This document shows positions 1 to 28,223 of a DNA stretch of 64,000 bases, piece by piece (positions within the stretch are counted from its first letter, which is position 1; each line of letters begins with the position of its first letter). Origin of the DNA: Bugula neritina. Its lineage: Eukaryota; Animalia; Bryozoa. Both the position numbers and the translations under genes were made by a program. The DNA lies in contig OZ037772.1 in NCBI GenBank assembly GCA_964035545.1, positions 11,034,818-11,098,817 of the forward strand, given 5' to 3'. A model generated the notes under the pieces. It was not told the origin of the DNA. It saw nothing but the letters and a program-made list of their open reading frames with translations, and made no database searches.

Positions 1-1281
1 CTTATTAAACTGGATCACAATTATTTTAGTTTAGTTGGTGTCGAAAATTTTATATTTCAACACAATCTGCTGCAAACACTGTTTTGAATTTGTAAAAGCT
101 TTCACACATTCTACAATATTTTGGCAATTATTTAACCTAAGTTTTTGAATACAAAGTTAATTGAAGGGCAGAAAGAAAATAAGTCTGGAAATAAAAATTT
201 TAAATGAGGCTTTTAAAATATGAAACAAATATGAACTAAAATTAAGTTCTTTAAAGTTAATATACTCCAATACAGAGCGTACATAGCCTGTATAATCTGT
301 ACCTTTAAATTGATGCTATATTTGTCATGAGAAGATAACTATATGAATAGCTGAAGGGTTAATTCAACATTCTGAAAATTCCATATGACATTTATTACTC
401 ATTGTTTAGAGGGAAAAGAACATAATATATATGTAAACAAATGATTAAAAAATATACTTATTATAAATATTGACTTCAAATTATATGGAACTGTTATTAT
501 ATTTATTTTTATAGTTGCAGTAGCAAAAAATTATAATATAATATTATTTTTGTGTTTTTGTACTTTTATTCCAAGATAAATAAATAAACAGGGCACAAAG
601 TAAACATTATGCATTGCTTGCATAGATCTTTCAAGATTAAACTATAAATGTAATAAACACAAATAGCTAGGGGAAAGCCTCAAATATATGACAAGGCATA
701 GCAAGCTATATTGCAATGTTCTAACAATTAATGTAATTTTACTTGATATACAATATAGCAAAATACACTATAATATAACACGATTTTATATAATAAGTTG
801 CATTAAGCAATTGTTATGGATAACTACATTTCGACTTGAAGGTAGGCCTATTGGTTTTCAAAACAAAATTAAACGTCAAAACCCTTATAATTTGATAACC
901 ACCATTTGTGAAAATTTGTTCCTAAACTTTAAATCAACATTATAAATTTAGTTCAATCAGAAAAAAAATGTAGTTTTTTCAGATTATAAATGCCACTCAG
1001 TAGTTAAGTTGTGAGAAAGCAACCATTCAAACATATTAAAACACAATATTGTGTCACCTGGCTGATATTTTCTCATTCATGCAAAATATTTTATAGTTAA
1101 AATAATTTTATACATTAGTCACACAGCTACAACAGACACATATAAAACTTCTATATGTGGGAGGCAATGAAAGAGCTCCCCTACTATGTATAGCTTTGTG
1201 TATGGAGCTCAGACTACAAGCACTTGCAGAGTGATGACACAGTATTTGATAAATTGTCGTCACATGATGTGTCAGTGTACT

Positions 1282-1474: not shown

Positions 1475-4400
1475 ATGTCTAACAGACCAGTAAGTATTAC
1501 ATCTTTTTATAGATCTTTCTTGTCCTATTGTGTTGCAAAATATATAATTATATAAAATTTATTTACTTCAAAAACAGTAAAATTGTGCAAACAGCACAAA
1601 TACCATATTTAACTTTTTCAACCTTTTTGTATGAAGCAATTCAATTTTGAAATGCTTTCTTTCAAAATCTCGTAAAATTTGCTAATGTGAGTTGAATATA
1701 AATTGCCAGCTGCTCTTATTCAAAGCGTATAGTAAGCTTTCAAGAAAAATTACTTTTTCTGGAATAAAGTAATTAATATTTTCTATTAAAACATTGAAAC
1801 AATAAAAAATTTACTTGCTTATGCTCACTTCCAAGCAGATGTTGAGTTACTAAAATGCAGTTTTGAAACTTTAAAAACGTTCTCAATCATGCCTGTCCAT
1901 TAGCAAAACTTCTGAAACTAGTTTTCAACTTTATCTCAAATGCCAACTGCTTTCTGCACATATTTTTAACTTCTGAATTTGTCTTGTCGCTCAAAATCAA
2001 AAGCTGAACCTTTAATAATATAAATTGAAGAACTTTTGAGAAATTATGATATGTTAAAAATTTATATGTATATAATTTTTATTGTATGTTTTATACTTAA
2101 ATATTGTATTAGAATAATAAGTATATATATATATACTATATTAATATTTATATTATGTTGTGCTTTTTATTTTATATATATTATGTAGTCTATATTGTAT
2201 TATAAGTATTATTTTTTTATATTAAAGCAAAACCATTAATTGGGCTTTAATTTTCAAACTTTTCCCTAATAATCCAACAAAACAAACCATCATCATTCAT
2301 GTTTCATCGCAATATTCATAGTATACTGTCTGGTATTTAGCGAACATGCCCTGTTCTAGCATAGCCTCTGTGAAGCTTTAGCCTTGTTTTATTTCTTATA
2401 TCTTGTCTCTTGGTTTGATGGGCGAGTTTACCAGCAGTAAACTTTTGGAATAAGAAGCCTGTGTTATAGAACTGCAAATATTTTGAATAGCAATAATTCT
2501 TAGTAGATTTTGTGGCATAAAAAGTAGTTGGGCTGTAAAATAGTTGTAAGCATATTTTAAACCCAAATACCAAACTAAAAAATATAAACCCAGCTATACA
2601 TGTTTCCCGAACTGCACTTGTAGCACTATAGCACTGCAGTTTGCAGTTTACAAAATTGACAAGCCTTAACGCAATTGATTACTGAGTAATTGAAAAAAAC
2701 AGCACACAACATAATATTGAAATAATTGCCATGATAGCATAATAACACATAACATGTGCAATGTTAAAATTGTCTCTGGTTTTTATACTGAATTAACGTC
2801 TTCATTTCTATTTTTAGAAAAAACATTAACCACTATAATTTAATTATGAGTAAAAACTTATGCACTCTTATAGCGTTCAAAAGCAATTTCAACAACAATT
2901 TGAGAGATTAAAACTTTCATGACTAAAGTAATAATATTTTGTGTTTGGGAGACTGAGGGAAGGGTCCGGAGATGAAAGTATATGAGGAATAAGTAGAATA
3001 GTAAATACCCGAAATAACATAGTTATATTTTTGTTGTTGTAACATGTTAGTTTAATCTATCAGCAACTAGCATGGCATTATTATTCTCAAGTGGAAAATA
3101 CCCACAGCTAGTCTCAGGATCACAGCTATTCTCAAAAAACACCAGACTATTGCCATGATCACAGGCCACTGTGACACTTGTTTTTAGACTTATCTGTCAA
3201 CAAGGTATTGTCTTAAATAGACTTTCCTGTGGCTAAATGAGTGCCAAGAGGCAAATTCGTCTTGAGAGATGAGACATCCTTTTTATATAAGCATAGTAGT
3301 AATAGCTGTAACTTATATAGACAGTATGTCTTATTTGTTGATCAAGAGACCAGCAATAACAGCATGATGAGCTATAGTGCCTCAACATGTAAATAAAATA
3401 CCACATCTTGCTCAGCTAAAATCACCATCACAATATATTCATAGATATTATTAATTCATAGGAATAACATTTTTATTTATAAATAAGTAAGTTAATTGGT
3501 TTATCTTTTATTTGTTTGACCATCTTATAAGTGCAAATAATAAACAGTACTTTTTTGCATTTTGAGTTGATAGGCATTTGGACATAGCATTTATAGAAAA
3601 CCGAGTGTAAAAACTGAAAATGCAGTTTGCCTTTTTCTATTACATATTGAATACAATATAAAAGTAGATAAATTTCTGTTTGACTAAGTCATTTTAAAAC
3701 TTAATTCAAGATAATGTTTTAACTACCAAATAATTTTACGACTCTTGCAGTTGCAAGGCAGCCATCACTATAAATAAGCTGAAATGGGTAGATAGCTTTT
3801 TTTACTAAAGCTTGAATACAATATAAAAGTAGAAAAAAATACAGATTGCTTTATTTACTGTAAAAGATTCCAATATCAAATCCTTCTCCAAACCCCTGCA
3901 GTTGCAAAGTTGCCATGAATATAAATAAATGGCAAGCAGGAAAAAAGCAGCAATTAAAGTCAAATAGTCAGAAAATTCCCAGAACAATGGCAGCTAGGGT
4001 AACTCTGGTATGTGGGGTAAGCATGGGAAAATGTAGTTCTCCAAGTCTTGGGCTGCTTTAGGAATAATATTCTCTACAAACGCTGCCAACTCCCATCCAA
4101 CAAAACAACAACATAGAGCTAATTAGTTTTTAAACTAAATAATGGATGTCTTTCCCATGGCCGCTGACAGCTAACTTATTGATAGAGTATTATGATATAC
4201 GGCTGCAGCAGGTCCAACTCTGTAATTATCATTAAATTGTAAAGAAATAGTGATTAACCAGCCACCATAGAGTATATAGCTCAAACATACTAATAGTGGT
4301 ATGACTATCAACAGAGCTTCATTTAATCTAATAATAGCTGCAGTATAGATTTAAATAGAAATATATTTGGGGGCTTTTGATTATAAGTATAAGTTCATAA

Positions 4401-14398: not shown

Positions 14399-17300
14399 TT
14401 ATTGGATGACTTCTTTCTTGCTAGTCAAATCAGCTGGCTCCACATATTCACCTGGACTAGTGGAACTGTATCGCCCTTCCTCATCAGTTCTCTGTTATAT
14501 AGAGAAAATATATTTATATTTGATTGGTTATCACTTGGAAAGCTAGAAAATTTAGCTGAAACTATAATATTAACAGACAAAGCTGTTTCGAGACATAAAA
14601 TTATCCCCCTTGAAAACTATGTCAAATCATATATGATAAACATTAAGTAGATGAGGATCAAACTATGCGCTTAACTCTAGAAATATTATAGAGTAAAAAT
14701 TTCCAGAATTTTCCACCAGGTTTTCAACTTCCTAAAACACAAAATTCAACACATTGCTAGTTTCAAACTTTATTTAAAGCAATATTAGCATATAGTTTAG
14801 AATTAAGCATTAAGATATTAAATAAAAACTAACATTATGTAAGACATAAAGTTATAATAATATCACTTTATTCTATGAAGTATCAAGTACAACACTCACT
14901 CTCTGCTCAGCCATCAACTGATACATCTCCTGTGGGTTGTATCCTCCAGATGCCTGAGATATTATGTCATGTCTCATTGATGCAGTACAGAGCGCCTCAT
15001 CTGATGCCCCTAAATCAGATGTGAGCTGATATGGTGAACTTAGACCAACATGGGCTTTTATAATAATATGGCTAGTAGCTTAACTAAGTATGCCAAGTGA
15101 ATGAGTCATGTTAATTTTTGAGGTAGAAACTGAAGAATTAAACAAATTTTGCTGCTGCTGATTGCAGTATATAGAAGGTAAACTAGAATTCAAGAAAAAA
15201 AAAGATTTTTATATTTTATTTAAAAAAACATTAGCATCAGCTAAGTTAAAAGTCTATAATTTCTTATACAGTTTGAATTCTGCTGAAAACAAACAAAAAA
15301 TTTTGCTCGCAATTGTCAAATAAAATATAATATATTTTTCACAGTTGCATAGGACACATTGTATGTAGCTATTTGTAGCTGGATTTTGAGATGGGAATAA
15401 ATCCCTAGCTGGAGTTAAGTTAGCATTGAAGCTTTACTTACTAGCAAAGCTTGATAAGTTTACTTTAGAAGTTTAGTTGACAACTTTCAATTTCTTATCG
15501 CATGTATTTAAAGCAGTTCTAAATAACAATTGTTTTTGCTGATTAAGCTGCAATCAATGTAATACACAGTTAAAGGGATAGTTATATTTTTAAACAGTTA
15601 TTAGGAAATTTTTTAATTTTTGAATGTTGAAGATATATTAAAGAACAAACACTGAATCAGCTCACCAGACAAAGACTTAGCACCATAAAATGTTGCCTCA
15701 TTTCTTGCTTTGATCTCATTTTTCTTGTTTCGTATTCTTTTGTTGCCAAACCAGTTAGATACCTGAAGAGATCATTGTATTGCCAAATGTTAAAAGCATT
15801 AGGTATACACTCTAATGTACTAATGGAAATGCATTGCATTGCTAAATATGACCAGAATTAACTTTATACTCATAGACAAAACTAAAATAGTCAACTTTCA
15901 ATTATGTAATACGCATTCATTTATTTTATATCAGTATGTATTATGAAGAAAACGTACACGACTCAACGCAGAAATAATTTCTATATAATTATGTAATCAT
16001 ACTTTGTTGAAAACATTTAATAATGTAAGTAGGTATAGAATATTAGACTATAGTTACTTTTACTTCTGGTTCAGATAATAGGGGAGGGGGACTTATAGAA
16101 AATACCCCACCCTACCTGAGAGACTGAGATGTTACAAGACTTGGCCAGCTCCAGCTTAGCATCCTCTGATGGGTACTGTCTCTGAGCGTTAGAGTAGAAG
16201 TAAGTGTTCAACTTCTCCGTCGCTTGTCTCGAAAAGTTTCGTTTTCTCGGCCTAAAATTCGATAATTTAGAAACAATGCAAAATAGCAATATTTTGCCTT
16301 AACAATTGAAAGTACTTTTATAGCATTGATTTAGATAGTATTACTATAGTCCTTTAATGGTAATAAAAGCAAATAGCGGGAATTTAACCGTGCGTCAAGA
16401 AATTCGTTCCTCAGTCTCATTACAGAGTCACAGGTATCTTTTTTCAACAAGTGCTCAACTTTGGAAAATTCTCCTTCAATTCTGGCAACTTGACTGTCTA
16501 TCTCAGTTTGATTGATTGGTCGGATGGTGCTCTGGCGCGACAGCACTTTGAGGGCGTGGCCAGTAAACTCTGAGCATGCCTGGAAGGTACATCCTGAACT
16601 TAGGAACATTAGCTTTAAGCATCTCCAAAGATTAGAGTAGGTATGCTATTTTAATGTCTATGTAAGCTTTCATGTAATACTTGTATTTGCTTATATTTGT
16701 CACACTATGTTATAGTAAATATATGTACACTCACCTGTTTATAATGTCACATCATGTAGCAATTATGTACACTCACCTGTTCATACTGTCACATTATATA
16801 GTGAATATGTACACTCACCTGTTTATACTTGTCACACTCTTGGTGGTAGATAGTTCTAATCTGCGCCAACTTGTTCTTATATTCAGCATGTTCTAAATAA
16901 TATGTTAAGTCTGTATTGCAAAATATTTCAAGAAATATTGTTATTATCTTATATTACGTTATTCTACATCATATGACTTTCTGTAATTAAGAAATGTTGA
17001 AGTATATATTAATTTTCATTATAATTATTATGAAATATCATACTGCTTTAATTTATATTTTGCCATATTGTATATTATTGTTATATTATATTGTGTTATT
17101 CTACAATATGGTTATTTATCTTATATTATACTACAATATATTGTATTATATTATACTAAACTATACATTTATTATATTTGCTATTCAATTACTGGGGCAT
17201 AGAACTTATAAAACTGAGATGTGAATATCAGGTATTTTAGAAACTGTATGCTATGTACAAGCTCACCATCAAAACCACCTGCTGAGGACGTGTCATGGAA

Positions 17301-17507
17301 GTCAATAGGAGGACCAGTGACACTCTCAGTCTGTAGAATGTTATCTAGTGTACTCAACTTGCTCTCCAGGGGTGTAGCTGAGCTGGTGTCATTTTTCAGG
17401 GGGTTGTCTGATTCTACGGAGATACATATAAATGACTAGTGGACTATAAATAATTAGTTTATATCATATAATATCAGTATAATATTAGTTTATATATATA
17501 TATATAC

Positions 17508-17566
<59 letters not shown>

Positions 17567-17814
17567 TAGATAGATAGATAGATAGATAGTGAAGAGGATA
17601 TTAGATATGTGACTGAGTTAAAAATAGTGGGGAAGAGAAAGAGAGGACGACCCAAACGAAGATGGATGGACACGATAGGAGATAACATGAAGCGGTGGGG
17701 CCTTAAACCAGAGAATGCAGAAGACCGGGAAAGATGGCAGACGCTGATAGAGATTGGAAACCCGCAGACCGGTCACTCGTACAGGACTACGACCGTATAG
17801 GTGTGAAAGGTGTG

Positions 17815-17880
<66 letters not shown>

Positions 17881-17900
17881 ATATATATACATATATATAC

Positions 17901-17996
<96 letters not shown>

Positions 17997-19156
17997 AACC
18001 TACTTCTTTTCTCTTTCATCTCTTTAAAAACCTCATATAGAGCTGATGCCATTCTGTTAGCTTTGAGACTATTCATTCTGAAATTAGTATAAACTATAGT
18101 AATTGATAATACATCAGTTCTATGTGATATCTACAACACAACGGTTTTACATAACACGTAATACAGCTGTTCTCCAAGGAGTTGCGTTATTCTATGAATA
18201 AATTTTCTTTCTCAACATAACTGTTTCAGTATAATATAATATAGCATTGAATGCCATATCGGGCATGCAGATACATTAGAGCTCAGTGGATATTTGAGTT
18301 GTTCATTGCTTTCCACATATGCATTGCCTTGTGGCATAAATAAATAACAAAGTTTCTTAATTATTGTAAAACCTTATAACAAAGTTCTCTTTTATTGCTG
18401 CTAGAGAAAGCATACCAGTTTCTCTTCTACGTTAGTACGCAGAGCTCAAACTGCCATCTTCATGTTAATCAAAGGCCGTGGACTTTTAATTTACTTGGCA
18501 AAAATAGTCTCGTGTGGCGGAGGGCAGAAAAGCGGGCTCTATATGCATTGTGTAAAGATAATGTGTTGATATTAATATATTTTCAAGCATGTTATATGTC
18601 TTGCTAGAGGTTAAAGCGTAATAAACTCTTATTCTACCATGGCACTTATGATTGGGTTTGAAAGCAGCTTGCTTATTTCTACCATTTAAAAATCACCATG
18701 ATCACTAAACATTTATTGCCTCATACTTTCTATTGATATAAAAGAAAAAAATAAAAGACCTTCAAACAGTGAGAGAAATGGAAGCAGCCGTGGTCTAGGG
18801 GTCAGAGCGTTCGCCTAGTAAACACGAGGTCATGGGTTCGAGCCCATACAGAGGCCATTGGTGATGTTAGGAAGCACATCCAGTCATAATTGCTCCTGTG
18901 CCTCATTCAAATAAGTCCTTAACTCGCTTTAACAAAAACCTTTTCCATCAGGGGTTTCTCACAGGTATAGTGACTATAAATTTCCGTGAGTTTTTTCCAG
19001 CTACCCAAACAGGACAAGGCGGAGATAGGTGAGAATTAGTGAGAAAAACAGTGAAAGAAACTTTCAAAGTGAACAAGACTATATGAATACTTACGCTGAA
19101 GTAATATCCTGTGAACTTGAATACTCCATAGTTTTAAATGCGTCTTGAGCATACAT
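14399..19156 (-). CDS. Divergent Pbx/extradenticle paralog (PBC-class TALE homeodomain protein), 9 exons, 'Pbx-B'
   Basis: Exons 19156-19095 ([20 protein letters not shown]), 18077-18004 ([24 protein letters not shown]), 17413-17267 (..[16 protein letters not shown]..), 16892-16819 ([25 protein letters not shown]), 16579-16389 (ACSEFTGH...LRNEFLDAR), 16251-16116 ([45 protein letters not shown]), 15762-15666 ([15 protein letters not shown]), about 15054-14900 (needs an AAG acceptor), 14491-14399 (TAA). Intron positions and phases match the canonical copy. Confidence 0.85.
17488..17992. repeat. (TA)n/(GATA)n microsatellite split by a LINE fragment
   Basis: Long TA runs at 17490-17565 and 17818-17992. 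Confidence 0.95.
17588..17817 (+). mobile_element. 5'-truncated RTE-clade LINE 3' end
   Basis: [50 protein letters not shown] (RTE ORF2 C-terminal motif), followed by the tail GGTGTGAAAGGTGTGAAA. Confidence 0.85.
18780..19044 (+). mobile_element. tRNA-derived SINE, longest copy (with LINE-like tail)
   Basis: Pol III A box TGGTCTAGGGG, B box GGTTCGAGCCC, anticodon-arm-like CCTAGTAAAC (Thr-AGT-like), body GTTAGGAAG.CATCCAGTCATAATTGCTCCTGTG. Four other copies in the window. Confidence 0.85.
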
Positions 19157-19628
19157 TGTGCCAAGTAAGCTGCCTAGCAAATTAGGAAGGTTAAAGATGG
19201 TGCTACAAAATTGTAGTGATGTTTATGAGAACCCAGAGACGTGTTTGTCAACACCAGTCAAGTGCTAGCAAGTGTTGACAATTGCCAGCAGGTGTTGACA
19301 GATAGGCAAAATGAACAATTGAGAGTCTGTCAGCTTGATATCTGATGGATGAAATATATCAACAGATTTACACTTACGAAATATACATATGGTACCAAAG
19401 TACACTTGTATTACACAGGGGGCATATACTCTACCAACATACACACATACTCACATTATACCAGACTATAGTATGGATCAGTATATAGATAGCATGGTAT
19501 AATAATACATGCAGGTATATGGTGATTTTGTATTATATATTACAAGCACACCGTGTACTTGGTATCTTATATAAAGGTGCTATAGCGTATGTTATATTAT
19601 AGTAATCACTTATAGTTATAATATAAAA

Positions 19629-19843
19629 GGAGCAGCCATGGTCTAGAGGTTAGAGTGTTTGGCATAGTAAACACGAAGTCATGGGTTCGAACCCCAACAA
19701 AGGCCATTGGTGATGTTAGGAAGAGAATTCAGTCATAATTGCTCCTGTGCTTCATTTAAATAAGTCCTTAGCCTGATCTAACAAAAACCCCTTTCCATCA
19801 GGGGTTTTCTCACAGGGATAGTGACTATAAACTTCCGTGAGAG
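19629..19843 (+). mobile_element. tRNA-derived SINE copy
   Basis: Colinear with the 18780 copy over about 210 bp. Confidence 0.85.
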
Positions 19844-21021: not shown

Positions 21022-24000
21022 CTATTTCTTGTTAGACAAATCATCTGGCTCTTTATAGATGCCAGGACTGCTGTATCTTCGGACATCCTCAGCTCTCTGT
21101 AACATAAACATAAAGTATAGCTGACAATCAAATTGCTCAACCAATAAAAAACTTGCGTTGAATATTTGATTCGTAGAAAATTATCTGCAGTTATTCATAG
21201 TCAAGGTACACAGAACTATAAATAAAAAGCAATTTCAGCACAAAAAATACATAATTATAAAATAACTATGCTACATAAATCACTATGAATTACCAGAAAA
21301 AATCTTTAAACTTTTTGCTGATCCAAAAGGTTTTATCTATTTAGCTTTTGTGCATTAAAAAGTAAATTTTATAATAAAGAACAGCAAAACAGCCTTTGTA
21401 CTATGAAAAAGGAAAAAAAATTCACTATGCAGACTGGAATGAGTAACTCTCGGGGTTTTCTAATGATACTCAACATATTAAGTGGAAGAAGAGAGATTTA
21501 AGACATTACAATACTATGACAAGGAAACAAAGTTTAGAAAGCAGACGGAGTTTGTTAACCTTTAAACAGTGCATGATGAGACAACTCCAATTTTCAATTA
21601 CATTTTTTAAATGATATTCACCAACTGTAACCAGTTTATTTTATGAAACACACATTTTAACACATGTCAAATGCTTTAAAGCAATTAGCATAAAGTTTAA
21701 AACTTAACTAGTATACTGTTGAAGATCACCAATAAAAACTGGCATTATGTAAGACATAAAGTTATAATAATATCACTTCATTTTATGAAACATCAAATAC
21801 AACACTCACTCTCTGCTCAGCCATCAACTGATACATCTCCTGAGGGTTGTATCCTCCAGCTGCCTGAGATATTATGTGTCTCATTGACGCTGTTGAGTTC
21901 TGAATGTTAGCAGCTACCTGATCAGCGGGGAACGCCCCCTCAGACGCCCCCAAACCAGACATGAACTGCCCAGGAGAAGTAAGGTTAGGAGCATTCATGG
22001 AATACGCTACAAAATACCAACATATTCTCAAGTTATAGAAAACTATACTTCAATGAACTAATAATAATTAGTAAATATTCTAAATATATTAAATTTCAAA
22101 AAATTAAAGTTAATGACTGACTGAGTGCCTATTTTGTTCCAATCTAGCTATTTTTCTTTTAAAATATTATTTTATATAAACTTATAACTATGTCATTAAA
22201 GTAAAAACTATAATTTAAAATAAATTCACAGCTCTCAAAGTATACAATTGAATTACAAACCAATCGGATCAGAAGATGATAAAATAAACAATCTAAAGAA
22301 AGTGTACAGATGCTGAAGGATGTGCAGAATGTAGGCTAAATGTCCCATACTTACGGGGCACTCTAGACGCCTCTCTCCCAGCTGCTTTAGCCGCATACAT
22401 GTTAGCTTCCTCTTGCGCTTTACCGATATTTTTCTTATATCGGATTCTCTTGTTACCGAACCAATTGGAAACCTGCGTCAGACATACATTGTAACTAATC
22501 AAGTATAACATACACATTATATACAATAATTTATGTGATATATATATATAATACAGCATACAGACAGACTACAAGCTACACCACACTATTTTGAAGTTGC
22601 CCGCTTACCTGAGAGACTGAGATATTACACGATTTAGCCAACTCCTCTTTGGCCTCCTCCGAAGGGTAGGGATTGTTGATGTGAGAATAAAAGTATTCAT
22701 TTAGTCTTTCAGTCGCCTGCTTCGTAAAGTTCCTTCTTTTTCGTCTACAAACATGTCACGGCATTTGAAAGAAATGTGACTGGTAAAAGAAACACTAAAC
22801 AACAGATACACTTTACACAAATTAAACAATACAGGAAGTAGAGAGCAGACAGGAAGTAGCGCGTAGACAGGAAGTAAAAAGGAAGTAGAGAGGACAAATC
22901 CAAACCTAGCATCAAGGAACCGGCTCCTTAGGATCATGACAGCCTCACACGTACTCTGCTTTAATTGCATTTCAATGGACGAGAAATTCTTTTTGATAAT
23001 CATAACCATGCGTTCCATCTCGGTCTTGGCGACGGGTCGGGTACGTCCCTGCTCCCGCAACAGTTGGGTCACATGACTAGTGAACTCTGAACATGCCTGA
23101 AACACAAACACACATAACTTTGGTAAAGAAATCCTTGCTTATTTACTTTAATTGTAACCACGTAGCCAATATAAAGTTTCTGCAGTTTATCCTTTACCAT
23201 AATGTTATAGAAAATACTTGCAACTTGATCAACATTTTCATCCAATTTGCAAATAAATTCATATTTGTCACACTGTGTAGTGAATATGTACACTCACCTG
23301 TTCATACTGTGACACTATATAGTAAATATGTACTCACCTGTTCATACTGTGACACTATATAGTAAATATGTACTCACCTGTTCATGCTGCGACACTATAT
23401 AGTAAATATGTACTCACCTGTTCATACTGTCACACTATATAGTAAATATGTACACACTCACCTGTTCATACTTGTCAAACTCTTGATGGTAAATAGTTCT
23501 AATCTGCGCCAACTTGTTCTTATAATCAGCATGTTCTAAAGTGTAATTATTCAGCATTATTAAAACACATTAAAAATTAACAATTTTAAAATGAAATGTC
23601 CATGTGTCGCCACTGCTTGATAAGGTGACACGATCATCTACAGCAGGGCCAATTCCAGACACCAACATGAAAGTAGAACTCAACCATGCTATGCTATGGA
23701 AAGCTACCAAACCCTTATAATCATTATATAAAACAATATTGAAATACAGTTGAAATACTATTCACTTAGGACAAATGATAATTTAAAGTTGTTTTACTAT
23801 GAAAGAGAGAAAAAATGAGGGGATAACTACGAAATAAAAGAACAGATTTACAAAAATTAAAGTGTTGTAAATATTGTACTTGTTTATTACCAATAATGAA
23901 CATGTAAACAGTGACTTACACTACTATACTGTACATCCATGTAAACATTGACCTACACTGTTGTACTGTACATCCATGTAAATAGTGACCTACTAAAAAC

Positions 24001-27000
24001 CCACCAATAGCATTCTCTGACTGGTTAGAGCCACCATTATCAGGGCCCGTAACTCCTTCAGCCTGCAGCATGTTATTCAGTCTAATTAGTTGAGAGTCTG
24101 GAGTATCGTCTGGTTGTTGGTTCCGGCTGTCTAGACCTGAATATATATTATATTATATTATATTATATTGTATTGTATTATATTGTATTATATTATATTG
24201 TATTATATTATATTACATCGTATTGTATTATACTGTATTATATTATATTGTATTGTATTATATTATGTTATATTGTACTACCTAGTGTAATAAAAAGTAC
24301 AGTATGCACAGCAATATAATACAATTAACAGTAATATGGTAATATATTGTGATATATATATATTGATATATTCTATGTGTATACATTATATATACAGTAA
24401 TGTAGCTTCATGTATAGTACGAGTAATATAATATTACATAGAATATTACTACAATTCTATGTATAGTAATATAATATTGCATAATACAGTAAGATCGTGT
24501 TATGTACAGTAATATACTATGAGACAGGAATTTAAGATAGACTAAGGACTATAAACTGAAACATGGGAACATGGGTTGGCAAGTGTTGAACAGAAAGCAC
24601 TGGTTAGGAAACTCTGGTTAGGAAAAGTGCGCCATCACATATTAACTTTCCTTTTGCCTATAAGAGTCTACATAACTCATCAGTTCAGCTTGACTTAAAA
24701 TAGATGAAATATAATTACGAAATGCAAATAATTAAAAGTTAAAAGAGGCATGGCCCACAGGAATGTGAATTAATTATGCGAGAAGTTGTCACAGGTGTGA
24801 TGTGTCACTGATGGGTTGACAAGCTGTCACAGGTGGGTTAGAGTTGACAGTCAACCCTAGTAGTGGCACTGCAGGGCGAGTGTCAGAATAAATTCAGTGG
24901 TTAGTGGAGAGGGAGAGAGAGTAAGTAGACAAAAATAAGCAAAGTAAGGATAGACTGAATTAAAAGGTATCTGGTATAGAGTCAGCATATAGAAGTAGAG
25001 TCAGCATATAGAAGTAGAGTCAGCATATAGAAGTAGAGTCAGCATATAGAAGTAGAGTCAGCATATAGAAGTAGAGTCAGCATATAGAAGTAGAGTCAGC
25101 ATATAGAAGTAGAGTCAGCATATAGAAGTAGAGTCAGCATATAGAAGTAGAGTCAGCATATAGAAGTAGAGTCAGCATATAGAAGTAGAGTCAGCATATA
25201 GAAGTAGAGTCAGCATATAGAAGTAGAGTCAGCATATAGAAGTAGAGTCAGCATATAGAAATAGAGTCAGCATATAGAAGTAGAGTCAGCAAGCTGGAGT
25301 CAGCATATAGAAGTAGAGTCAGCAAGCTGAAGTCAGCAGCTATAACCAGTTAACCAGATACTATTGATTCATATTAACCACCAGACAGCAAGAGTAAGAC
25401 AAGCAACTGTCAAACATATCAGTTATAATTAGTGCATATCAACTTGCCAATTACAGATAGTAGCCAATTAGGCTAGCGTTTAGTTGGTTTCAGTGTTTAG
25501 GGGGTTTAATATGTCACAGTATATACACTAACTACATACAAGTACACACAGTATATACACTTACTACATACAAATACACACAGTATATACACTTACTACA
25601 TATATAAATACACACAGTATATAAAACAGATACATACAGAGCATGTACACACTGTTTCCACACATAATATATGCACACTGTTTACAAAGTATGTAAATAT
25701 AATTTGCAATCAACATTTGGAATGCGTGGTTTGCTATTAATCACACTGGAGACATTAAGATACTGAATACTTTCTTTTCTGAGCTGTCACTGATTTAGTT
25801 GAGATTCCAAATATTTTCAGCCTCAAATAGAATATGAATAATGAGTGTAGAGTAGAATATAGAGTGAAAGATGTAGAGTAGAATTAATAAAATAGAGTGT
25901 AGAGTATGGGGTATAGAATAGAGAGCATAGAGTAGAAATTGTAGAATAAAGTGTAGAATAGAGTGTAGGGTGTAGCATAGAAAGTTTAGAATAAAGAATA
26001 TAGTGAGAATAGTGAGAGTAGAATAAAGAAAAGAAAATAGAGTATAGAAAGTACAGAGTAGAGTGTAAAATAAAGAGTATAGTGAGAATAGAATGTAGAA
26101 TATAGTATAGAGTATATAGTTTAGAATATAGAGTATAGAGTAAAGTGTAGAATAGAGAGAAGAGTATAGAGTATACATATAGAGTATAGTGTAGAATAGA
26201 GAGAAGAGTATAGAGTATATATATAGAGAGTAGAGTGTAGAATAAAGTATAGAGAGTGCAGAATAGAAAGTGTGGAGAGAAGAGCATGTGGGAAGAAATA
26301 GCACACTTGACTGCGTATCATCTCCCAAGACTGGCATATCAGTTACTACTAACCCAAGACTAATGTGTGAATTATTCAGGTTTTGACAGGAGGAGATTGA
26401 TGGGTAAATGAGAATGAAGTTGTAGCTGGTAACAGTAGTTGAGAGGAGCTAGTAGTGGGTAGTTACTAGTAGTAGTTAATAGGTAGTTGGTAGTTACTAG
26501 TAGTAGTTAGTAGATAGTTGGTGGTTACTAGTAGTAGTTAGTAGGTAGTTGGTAGTTACTAGTAGTAGTTAGTCGTGATAGTTGGTGGTTAACAGTTGGT
26601 GAGTAATAGTTGGTGGCTGGTGGAAAACTACTGGTGGGTAAGAATTGGTGGGTAACAGTTGGTAGTTACTGCTTACTAGTAGAAGTTAGTAGGTAGTTGA
26701 TAGGTAAGAATTGGTGGGTGATAAGTAGGCAGGTGGTGAAAAGTATCAGAAAGTCTATGTCCAGAGGAACTCTAAGCACAAATTACCTGTCTTCTCTTTT
26801 ATTTCTCTCAGCACCTGGTACAGAGCTGGCTTCATTCGGTGAGCATTCAGGGTGTGCTTCCTGAAAGGAACATATCTAGCATCAACACACACATCTCTAC
26901 ACATCTCTCGTGTAATAAACTTCACAGAGCAATTGCGTTTCAGATTTAGAAATTGCCACATACTCATAAACATAAATATGTCAACATAATACAAACTTTT

Positions 27001-28223
27001 GCAGAATTTGTTTCTTTAAAAGGGCAAATATAAAAAGCAGCTGTGTTAAACCAGAGTGGTTAGGTGCAGAATTTTGTAGCATGTGATGTTGTCCGACTAT
27101 AAAATAAAGCCTAAATTCCTAACTAAAGAATATAAACTCAAGCTAAACCAAGATTTACATCTTTGCACTAAAAGTTTATTCTTTAGTAAACTAGCAGCAA
27201 TATGCTCTCTGTTTATCTTTTTTCATATGTCATTGGTATGACCTTTGACCCTTTAACCCAGTAACAGCTGGAATAACAATAAACCTAATAAACAGTGAAA
27301 ACATTAAAAACTAATGAATGGTTATATTTAATGAGTTACACTGTTAAAGGGCAAGACATTCAATTTATGCTGGGATATAACTTATTTAGAAACCTTTTCT
27401 TACAGTAGATTTCCAAAATGAACTTGAATATTAACCTAGAAACTTAGATCAGCTTAACTGAACAGTTTAGTTGAATCTTTGTCTATATTAAGAACTTATA
27501 AACTATAACAGCTATCAGGTCCTTTTGACTTAGAACTAAGGAGTTTGAACAGCTGCTTGCCCCTGGGCTTATACCATTGATTGGTTTTATTATAAAGAAA
27601 CAACAACTCAAAAGCCAAGGCTTAGATTAGTTAAAAAAGTTGAAACTACAAAAATATTCTTTATTCTACCCAATAGATTAGGGAGTTTAAATTTCGTTGT
27701 TAGTTAACACAAAGTGGGTTACTCAAACTGATTAGTGTAACTATTGGGCCAAGTCAGTAGGTAAACACTTTGTATATAGACTAGCAACAGCTGAGTCACG
27801 CTGAGTTATGCTGGATCATTACTTATTATGCTGGGTTATGTTGAGTTATATACATTGCTAGTAGTTATAGAAAGTTAGTACTCATAATTAAGTAATTAAC
27901 TGAAAGAAACCCAGTTGTCAAATTGAGTAACTCATTTACCATTAATTACGTAGGAGCACTGTGATTACTATCATCCTAATCGCAATACTTTGTAACTTCA
28001 TGATTTTGATTATTACTATAACTAATAAGCCATAATTATCAGTAGTTTTTTTCTTTTAACACATAGCCTGAGGCTATATTTTTTCTACAAACCTAGCCTG
28101 TGCTTCATCCAGACTTTGATCAGTGATGGTCATGATTTGCTGCAATATTTGACCGATTTCTTGCTGTCGTCCATCTTGAGATTCATCAAATCCTCCAGCA
28201 TATGTAGTCTGAGGTTGAGTCAT
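21022..28223 (-). CDS. pbx: Pbx/extradenticle TALE homeobox transcription factor, canonical copy, 9 exons, 'Pbx-A'
   Basis: Exons 28223-28093 (..[22 protein letters not shown]), 26860-26787 ([24 protein letters not shown]), 24136-24005 ([17 protein letters not shown]), 23535-23462 ([19 protein letters not shown]), 23096-22906 ([21 protein letters not shown]), 22744-22609 ([26 protein letters not shown]), 22472-22355 ([29 protein letters not shown]), 22006-21810, 21096-21022 (TAG). Confidence 0.97.
23262..23476 (-). repeat. About 38-bp tandem repeat duplicating the Pbx-A exon 4 end and 5' splice site
   Basis: Four extra copies of CAG(T/C)ATGAACAG|GTGAGT..ACATATTTACTATATAGTG. Two extra copies at the equivalent site of Pbx-B (16690-16830). 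Confidence 0.9.
24977..25340. repeat. Near-perfect 19-bp minisatellite (TAGAGTCAGCATATAGAAG), about 16 copies plus degenerate units
   Basis: Directly visible head-to-tail repeats without spacers in Pbx-A intron 2. Confidence 0.95.
25820..26285. repeat. Purine-rich TAGAGTA-type low-complexity repeat
   Basis: Same family as 6010-6520; source of the Y/S/L/I-rich spurious ORFs. Confidence 0.85.
26440..26720. repeat. About 30-bp degenerate tandem repeat (GGTAGTTACTAGTAGTAGTTAGTAGGTAGTT)
   Basis: Five or more visible copies. Confidence 0.8.

Follow-up and report, generated by a model that had tools for sequence, protein, structure and literature searches.

Pbx/Exd proteins are among the most conserved transcription factors of animals, and Pbx biology has largely been framed on docking of the Hox hexapeptide and on Meis. 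What, then, becomes of a Pbx gene in which the parts that serve these two partners have been rewritten? The question is raised by a stretch of 64,000 nucleotides of the bryozoan Bugula neritina (assembly GCA_964035545.1, contig OZ037772.1, positions 11,034,818 to 11,098,817 of the forward strand; hereafter the window), where a canonical Pbx/Exd gene, Pbx-A, is accompanied by a divergent PBC-class gene, Pbx-B, which occupies positions 14399-19156 of the minus strand. On balance, we lean towards reading Pbx-B as a functional, lineage-specific PBC gene, an old tandem duplicate that has been selectively kept without canonical Hox docking, and that would work either as a Hox-independent factor or as a competitor of Pbx-A.

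The window consists of AT-rich animal DNA. Its minus strand carries WFxNxR homeodomain signatures at two places, ~15.7 kb and 22.4 kb, and the gene models were built by reading open frames and splice sites. Pbx-B has nine exons with a total of 984 nt (327 codons) and no internal stops; all eight introns are GT-AG, with the 16 splice sites intact, and every intron phase is that of the corresponding intron of Pbx-A. Both genes also have the same lengths for exons 2, 4, 5, and 6 (74, 74, 191, and 136 nt), and their proteins are 58% identical. The gene model thus bore out the original prediction of a tandem Pbx duplicate with nine exons, the same phases, and no stop codon, at the correct coordinates. 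In the whole 216,009,554-base assembly, a PF03792 search identified these two PBC loci alone. From the stop of Pbx-A to the ATG of Pbx-B the spacing is about 1.9 kb. The exons of Pbx-B, the codons of its TALE loop and residue 56, and the neighboring gene are located as follows.

19095-19156, minus strand: Pbx-B exon 1, with the ATG at 19156; 20 codons plus 2 nt; no Pfam PBC match.
18004-18077, minus strand: Pbx-B exon 2; 74 nt; weak PBC-A remnant (PBC, 15.2 bits).
17267-17413, minus strand: Pbx-B exon 3; no PBC match; four synonymous polymorphisms.
16819-16892, minus strand: Pbx-B exon 4; start of PBC-B; probable gene-conversion patch, with 93% nt identity to exon 4 of Pbx-A.
16389-16579, minus strand: Pbx-B exon 5; core of PBC-B (PF03792, 61.1 bits, E 1.6e-16).
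16116-16251, minus strand: Pbx-B exon 6; homeodomain residues 2-44, comprising the TALE loop and, before it, the N-terminal arm (RPRKR); Pfam Homeodomain/Homeobox_KN, with a homeodomain recognized in exon 6 of Pbx-A as well.
16170-16190, minus strand: codons of the TALE loop, N23-A23a-Q23b-R23c-Q24-Y25-P26 by translation.
15666-15762, minus strand: Pbx-B exon 7; helix 3 (residues 45-60) and the C-terminal fourth-helix region.
15727-15729, minus strand: codon of N56, which is Y in Pbx-A.
14900-15009, minus strand: Pbx-B exon 8; far shorter than exon 8 of Pbx-A; its 3' part a probable conversion patch; one synonymous polymorphism.
14399-14491, minus strand: Pbx-B exon 9, carrying the TAA stop (14399-14401).
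21022-28223, minus strand: Pbx-A, canonical Pbx/Exd; nine exons, 375 codons; upstream of Pbx-B in the same orientation.

In the homeodomain, the TALE loop HINNPYP of Pbx-A reads NAQRQYP in Pbx-B, and RIRYKK of helix 3 reads RIRNKK. Alignment to PBX1 and Exd (1PUF_B, 1B72_B, and 1B8I_B) was free of gaps, so that the length of the three-residue insertion is kept, and gave the changes H23N, L/I23aA, S/N23bQ, N23cR, P24Q, and Y56N. Compared with Pbx-A, the N-terminal arm is further altered by R3P, K4R, and R5K, and reads RPRKR; some conservative changes were found besides. Residues 45-55, K57, and K58 are unchanged, including G50, N51, R53, and R55. Translation and alignment therefore agree with what had been claimed for this homeodomain, namely the loop NAQRQYP, the replacements of Y56 by N and R5 by K, and a conserved helix 3.

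The sequence P24-Y25-P26 that follows the insertion is a hallmark of TALE homeodomains. This PYP motif is lost in Pbx-B, which has QYP both in the window and in a related lineage of B. neritina (the relative, described below). Among the PBC proteins fetched, a vertebrate-rich sample that also covered molluscs, annelids, arthropods, a rotifer, and a tardigrade, the canonical loop HL[SA]NPYP was present in 140 of 141 other proteins, the sole other exception being the orthologue of Pbx-B itself, and RIRYKK was found in 127 of 132. The loop of the relative's Pbx-B is NTHRQYP; the two lineages share P3, K5, N23, R23c, Q24, and N56 but differ at positions 23a (A/T) and 23b (Q/H), which suggests that their former function no longer constrains 23a and 23b.

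These changes fall on a well-described surface. In the HOXA9-PBX1-DNA structure (1PUF), the tryptophan of the hexapeptide is contacted by F252, L256, P259, Y260, and R288, whereas K292 contacts the residues after the tryptophan and Y291 stacks on it in molecular dynamics (PMC8198631); the same picture of the pocket is given in other studies (PMC4539518; PMC3957477). In homeodomain numbering, F252, L256, P259, Y260, R288, K292, and Y291 correspond to F20, 23a, P24, Y25, R53, K57, and Y56, respectively, so the residues that the original prediction had flagged as altered in the Hox-binding pocket do belong to the published list (PMC8198631). Pbx-B keeps four of the seven (F20, Y25, R53, and K57) and has changed three, with I replaced by A or T at 23a, P24 by Q, and Y56 by N, i.e., hydrophobic or aromatic residues by small or polar ones. 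In PBX1, interaction with the hexapeptide or cooperativity is reported to be lost when the three-residue insert is deleted or when alanine replaces contact residues, P259 among them (PMC8198631). Judging from the residues present, it is reasonable to infer that canonical hexapeptide docking has been lost by Pbx-B, which would make this protein a good candidate for a Hox-independent Pbx.

Divergence is also marked on the Meis side of the protein. With the Pfam PBC profile, exons 1, 2, and 3 of Pbx-A scored 17.6, 25.4, and 33.3 bits; in Pbx-B, exons 1 and 3 had no match, and the single weak match to PBC-A was that of exon 2 (15.2 bits, profile positions 28-48). PBC-B scores for Pbx-A and Pbx-B were 23.2 and 21.1 bits in exon 4, and 97.5 and 61.1 bits in exon 5, these two exons of Pbx-B matching positions 96-181 of PF03792 upstream of the homeodomain. 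Hence, PBC-A of Pbx-B appears eroded, its N-terminal half being unrecognizable, and PBC-B is kept. No hidden exon resembling exon 1 of Pbx-A was found upstream of Pbx-B between the two genes. PBC-A binds Meis and masks the nuclear localization signals of the homeodomain (PMC4539518; PMC3957477). Across the genome, Meis_PKNOX_N was found at two loci (G000:C3:14.21-14.22 Mb and G000:C1:35.02 Mb; L006-L009), presumably Meis and Prep, and no extra Meis/Prep copy accompanies the Pbx duplication. Genome-wide matches to Homeobox_KN numbered about 15.

Is Pbx-B maintained by selection? Tandem Pbx-A and Pbx-B, with an innexin downstream and in the same order, occur on two contigs, L004 (VXIV02000345.1) and L005, of the B. 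neritina draft assembly GCA_010799875.2, and the collinearity of both contigs with the window extends across their introns. Synonymous divergence (dS) is 0.04-0.09 between L004 and L005 and 0.19-0.26 between either of them and the window, which fits L004 and L005 being haplotypes and the window a different lineage of the complex. Between the window and L005, Pbx-A has a nonsynonymous divergence (dN) of 0.0011, a dS of 0.19, and a dN/dS ratio (omega) of 0.006, with one amino-acid difference in 375 codons. For Pbx-B, the corresponding values are 0.047, 0.25, and 0.19, with 33 amino-acid differences, and its protein has evolved about 40 times faster than that of Pbx-A. The Pbx-B differences comprise 34.5 nonsynonymous and 42.5 synonymous changes (Fisher p 3.7e-12 against neutrality); by exon, omega is 0.10 in exon 5, 0.10 in exon 6, and 0.26 in exon 7, and the comparison of L004 with L005 gave 0.18 for the gene. 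Moreover, the five exonic variants of Pbx-B seen in sequencing run X1 are all synonymous. This run, the sole one found with the locus, is DNA, since its contigs show even depth over the introns and no splice joints. The GC content at third codon positions of Pbx-B is 0.44 compared with 0.29 in its introns, and is similar in Pbx-A. In L005, exons 2-9 of Pbx-B are intact with canonical splice sites, and exon 1 is 95% identical in L004. A pseudogene had been expected to show a dN/dS close to 1, or mutations that disable it in relatives; with an omega of 0.19 and an intact copy on L005, the better of the two contigs, the test that was run does not point that way. Pbx-B is a maintained gene under purifying selection, and not a pseudogene.

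Regarding its age, synonymous sites between Pbx-A and Pbx-B are saturated, with a third-position identity of 0.2-0.5 everywhere except in two patches where it reaches about 0.9; the duplication is therefore old, far older than the split of the two lineages. A neutral copy of such age would not have kept 327 open codons and 16 splice sites. The two patches (16819-16892 against 23462-23535, and 14900-14990 against 21810-21900) are ~90% identical, including third positions and adjacent intron, and are probable gene-conversion tracts, located in exon 4 and in the 3' part of exon 8, that have spared the homeodomain. When 24 PBC proteins were placed in a maximum-likelihood tree, the Pbx-A and Pbx-B proteins of the two lineages fell into one group (support 100/87) that was separate from the Pbx proteins of molluscs, annelids, arthropods, and vertebrates, in line with the prediction of a tandem duplicate. 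Pbx-B stands on a very long branch in this tree, and long branches are hard to place, while the conversion patches bias it toward grouping with Pbx-A; as it stands, the topology favors a duplication on the bryozoan side. An exhaustive, profile-free search with exon 5 among 1.84 billion representatives returned three matches at 95% identity, all from the B. neritina draft GCA_010799875.2, and the next at 52% or less. Neither this search nor one with exon 6 returned Pbx-B orthologues beyond B. neritina, a weak blank given that other bryozoan genomes were not covered, and a word-based search with the GenBank model P0003 returned generic Pbx proteins only.

Taken together, the reading that we favor would run as follows. 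A tandem duplication of Pbx/Exd, long ago in the bryozoan lineage, would have produced Pbx-B, and purifying selection would have kept it while its protein changed fast. Through the unchanged helix 3, Pbx-B would still recognize the Pbx-type (TGAT) half-site; with 23a, P24, and Y56 replaced, the Hox tryptophan would no longer be docked canonically; and with the N-terminal half of PBC-A, which binds Meis/Prep, no longer recognizable, the protein would probably lack a canonical Meis dependence. Its role may then be that of a PBC factor independent of Hox, or of a competitor of Pbx-A at shared sites. A sharper version, which we put forward only tentatively, sees in Pbx-B a natural separation-of-function Pbx that would bind Pbx sites, would have lost both the Hox pocket and the Meis-binding N-terminus, and would, free of partners itself, compete with Pbx-A/Hox/Meis complexes or repress them, in a phylum that already has a reduced Hox complement.

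Several observations weigh against the favored reading, and some of them are better accommodated by other explanations. The putative loss of Hox docking is read from the identity of the residues; F20, Y25, R53, and K57 are retained, and Hox-PBC contacts independent of the hexapeptide are known (PMC4539518). A serious rival, though in our view a less likely one, is that Pbx-B has remained a functional partner of Hox proteins, as a sub-functionalized cofactor, either by a pocket re-shaped for lineage-specific Hox motifs or by contacts made through UbdA-type or other specific PBC-interaction motifs instead of the hexapeptide. Such a role would suit the four retained pocket residues and the unchanged insertion length, other modes of Hox-PBC interaction are documented (PMC4539518; PMC3383740), and the reduced and rearranged Hox complements of bryozoans (PMC10675955) would leave room for co-evolution; the omega of 0.10 in the homeodomain is equally compatible with it. 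However, exchange of P259 (P24) and another contact residue for alanine, or deletion of the insert, is reported to abolish the interaction with the hexapeptide or cooperativity (PMC8198631), and Pbx-B replaces all five residues 23-24 as well as Y56. In addition, the difference between lineages at 23a and 23b is more in keeping with a relaxation of constraint than with fine tuning of the pocket. The selection comparison that supports the preferred reading spans lineages within one species complex. The L005 contig bears an 11-bp deletion (L005:11522-11583 against window positions 19146-19160) that removes the first ATG of Pbx-B, the one used in the window and in L004, and makes M10 the first ATG there, leaving the start codon of Pbx-B uncertain; translation may in fact begin at M10, or the protein may do without its first nine residues. 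L004 shows frameshifts in exon 8 of Pbx-B, and the GenBank models P0002 and P0003 skip exons and look like ab initio predictions.

The deleted ATG and the frameshifts, together with 33 residue differences between Pbx-B orthologues compared with one for Pbx-A, and with a locus sampled in a single DNA run, could suggest a non-functional or unexpressed duplicate, i.e., a pseudogene that has not yet gained a stop. We consider this very improbable, and reject it on dN/dS, polymorphism, and age: omega is well below neutrality (p about 4e-12), the polymorphisms are synonymous in five of five cases, the reading frame and splice sites have stayed intact in spite of synonymous saturation between A and B, and third-position GC is well above that of the introns. 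Regarding the L004 frameshifts, they were rejected as disabling mutations because they sit in G/C homopolymer runs, and because the near-invariant Pbx-A is broken on that contig too, by a one-base loss in exon 8 and at the acceptor of exon 5; they are probable errors of the draft assembly. Least probable of all, to our judgment, is that the exons of Pbx-B form an alternative downstream cassette of Pbx-A, used by read-through, with isoforms that would join a normal PBC-A to the divergent homeodomain. The genes do share their orientation and are only about 1.9 kb apart, Pbx-B has no recognizable PBC-A start, and the identical phases mean that exons 1..k of Pbx-A joined to exons k+1..9 of Pbx-B would stay in frame. 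Nevertheless, exon 1 of Pbx-B, its donor, and the 60 nt upstream are conserved at about 90-95% between lineages, as would be expected of a first exon of its own. The reading of Pbx-B as a maintained gene without canonical Hox docking is the one that we retain.

Repeats were noticed in the introns of the locus and between the genes. The last ~30 nt of exon 4 with the donor (...ACAG followed by GTGAGTGT) are repeated within intron 4, in three copies 42 nt apart in Pbx-B (minus strand 16735, 16777, and 16819) and in two copies in Pbx-A (23298 and 23462), and also in the relative; they are possible decoy or alternative 5' splice sites, and the first unit, if retained, runs into a stop. Intron 2 of Pbx-B holds, between long (TA)n microsatellites, a ~210 bp insertion (17597-17810, plus strand) that is absent from L005 and repeated in the genome, with a depth in run X1 of 1700-3400 compared with about 100. 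Its open frame, rich in R, K, and W, looks like the tail of a retrotransposon, and a Pfam search of the insertion gave nothing significant. Finally, copies of an extremely abundant repeat, whose depth in run X1 sums to about 1.2-1.3e5, are present at 18724-19071, in intron 1 of Pbx-B, and at about 19620-19840, between the genes; this repeat looks like a tRNA-derived short interspersed nuclear element, and neither ARAGORN nor Rfam assigned it a tRNA or Rfam identity.

In public databases, Pbx-B is already present in the form of fragmentary, automatically named models. 'PBX4' (A0A7J7J706_BUGNE) and 'hypothetical protein EB796_002872' are its orthologues or alleles, with 95% identity over exon 5; these models, of 158 and 199 amino acids, lack either exons 3 and 7 or exons 6 and 7, and PBX4 is a name assigned automatically. 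In the GenBank models P0002, P0003, and P0258 the homeodomain exons were missed in both genes ('exd' without exons 6-7, 'PBX4' without exons 6-7 and more), so the public annotation of both B. neritina Pbx genes is unreliable. A literature search found no paper combining B. neritina with Pbx or dealing with Pbx-B.

Pbx-B amounts to a ready-made natural mutant, in which the DNA-reading helix is kept and the TALE loop, Y56, and the start of PBC-A are rewritten. As such, it could offer a way to study how a PBC protein functions when its Hox and Meis interfaces are gone, and it bears on how the Hox-TALE network has changed in bryozoans, where several Hox genes were lost (PMC10675955). Its practical value, which turns on expression and binding, is limited for now. 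Lineage-specific duplicates of transcription factors are common, and divergent extra PBC genes are known elsewhere (CEH-60); among the proteins sampled here, however, it is unusual for a copy under clear purifying selection to have lost the PYP proline and Y56 together with a recognizable start of PBC-A.

In comparison with known systems, canonical Pbx/Exd (PBX1 in 1PUF and 1B72, and Exd in 1B8I) shares with Pbx-B the PBC-B region, a TALE homeodomain with a three-residue insertion, and a helix 3 that is the same through residue 55; Pbx-B differs by NAQRQ in place of HLSNP/HINNP at loop residues 23-24, by Y56N, by the RPRKR arm, and by a PBC-A whose N-terminal half is unrecognizable. The premise that most invertebrates have a single pbx holds broadly, as in the oyster (PMC5322547), and has exceptions in three Helobdella entries, several Tachypleus entries, and the three PBC genes of Caenorhabditis elegans (PMC6824563). 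The novel TALE clades of spiralians, to which Pbx-B had been likened (oyster TALE1-14; Paps et al., 2015, PMC5322547), are also lineage-restricted, fast-evolving, and lophotrochozoan. Nonetheless, the likeness was not supported, since TALE1-14 are listed apart from the Pbx family (PMC5322547), whereas Pbx-B has PBC-B, has the exon structure of Pbx, and groups with Pbx-A in the tree, and is thus a bona fide PBC duplicate and no member of those clades, which lack PBC. Another parallel is given by CEH-60, along with CEH-40, of C. elegans, which are likewise extra, lineage-specific PBC genes in an animal that also has a canonical Pbx (CEH-20). CEH-60 serves in vitellogenesis and cuticle permeability, functions that lie outside Hox patterning, and works via its PBC domain with UNC-62/Meis (PMC6824563), whereas Pbx-B is most eroded in the Meis-binding part of PBC-A; the two genes stem from independent duplications in different phyla.

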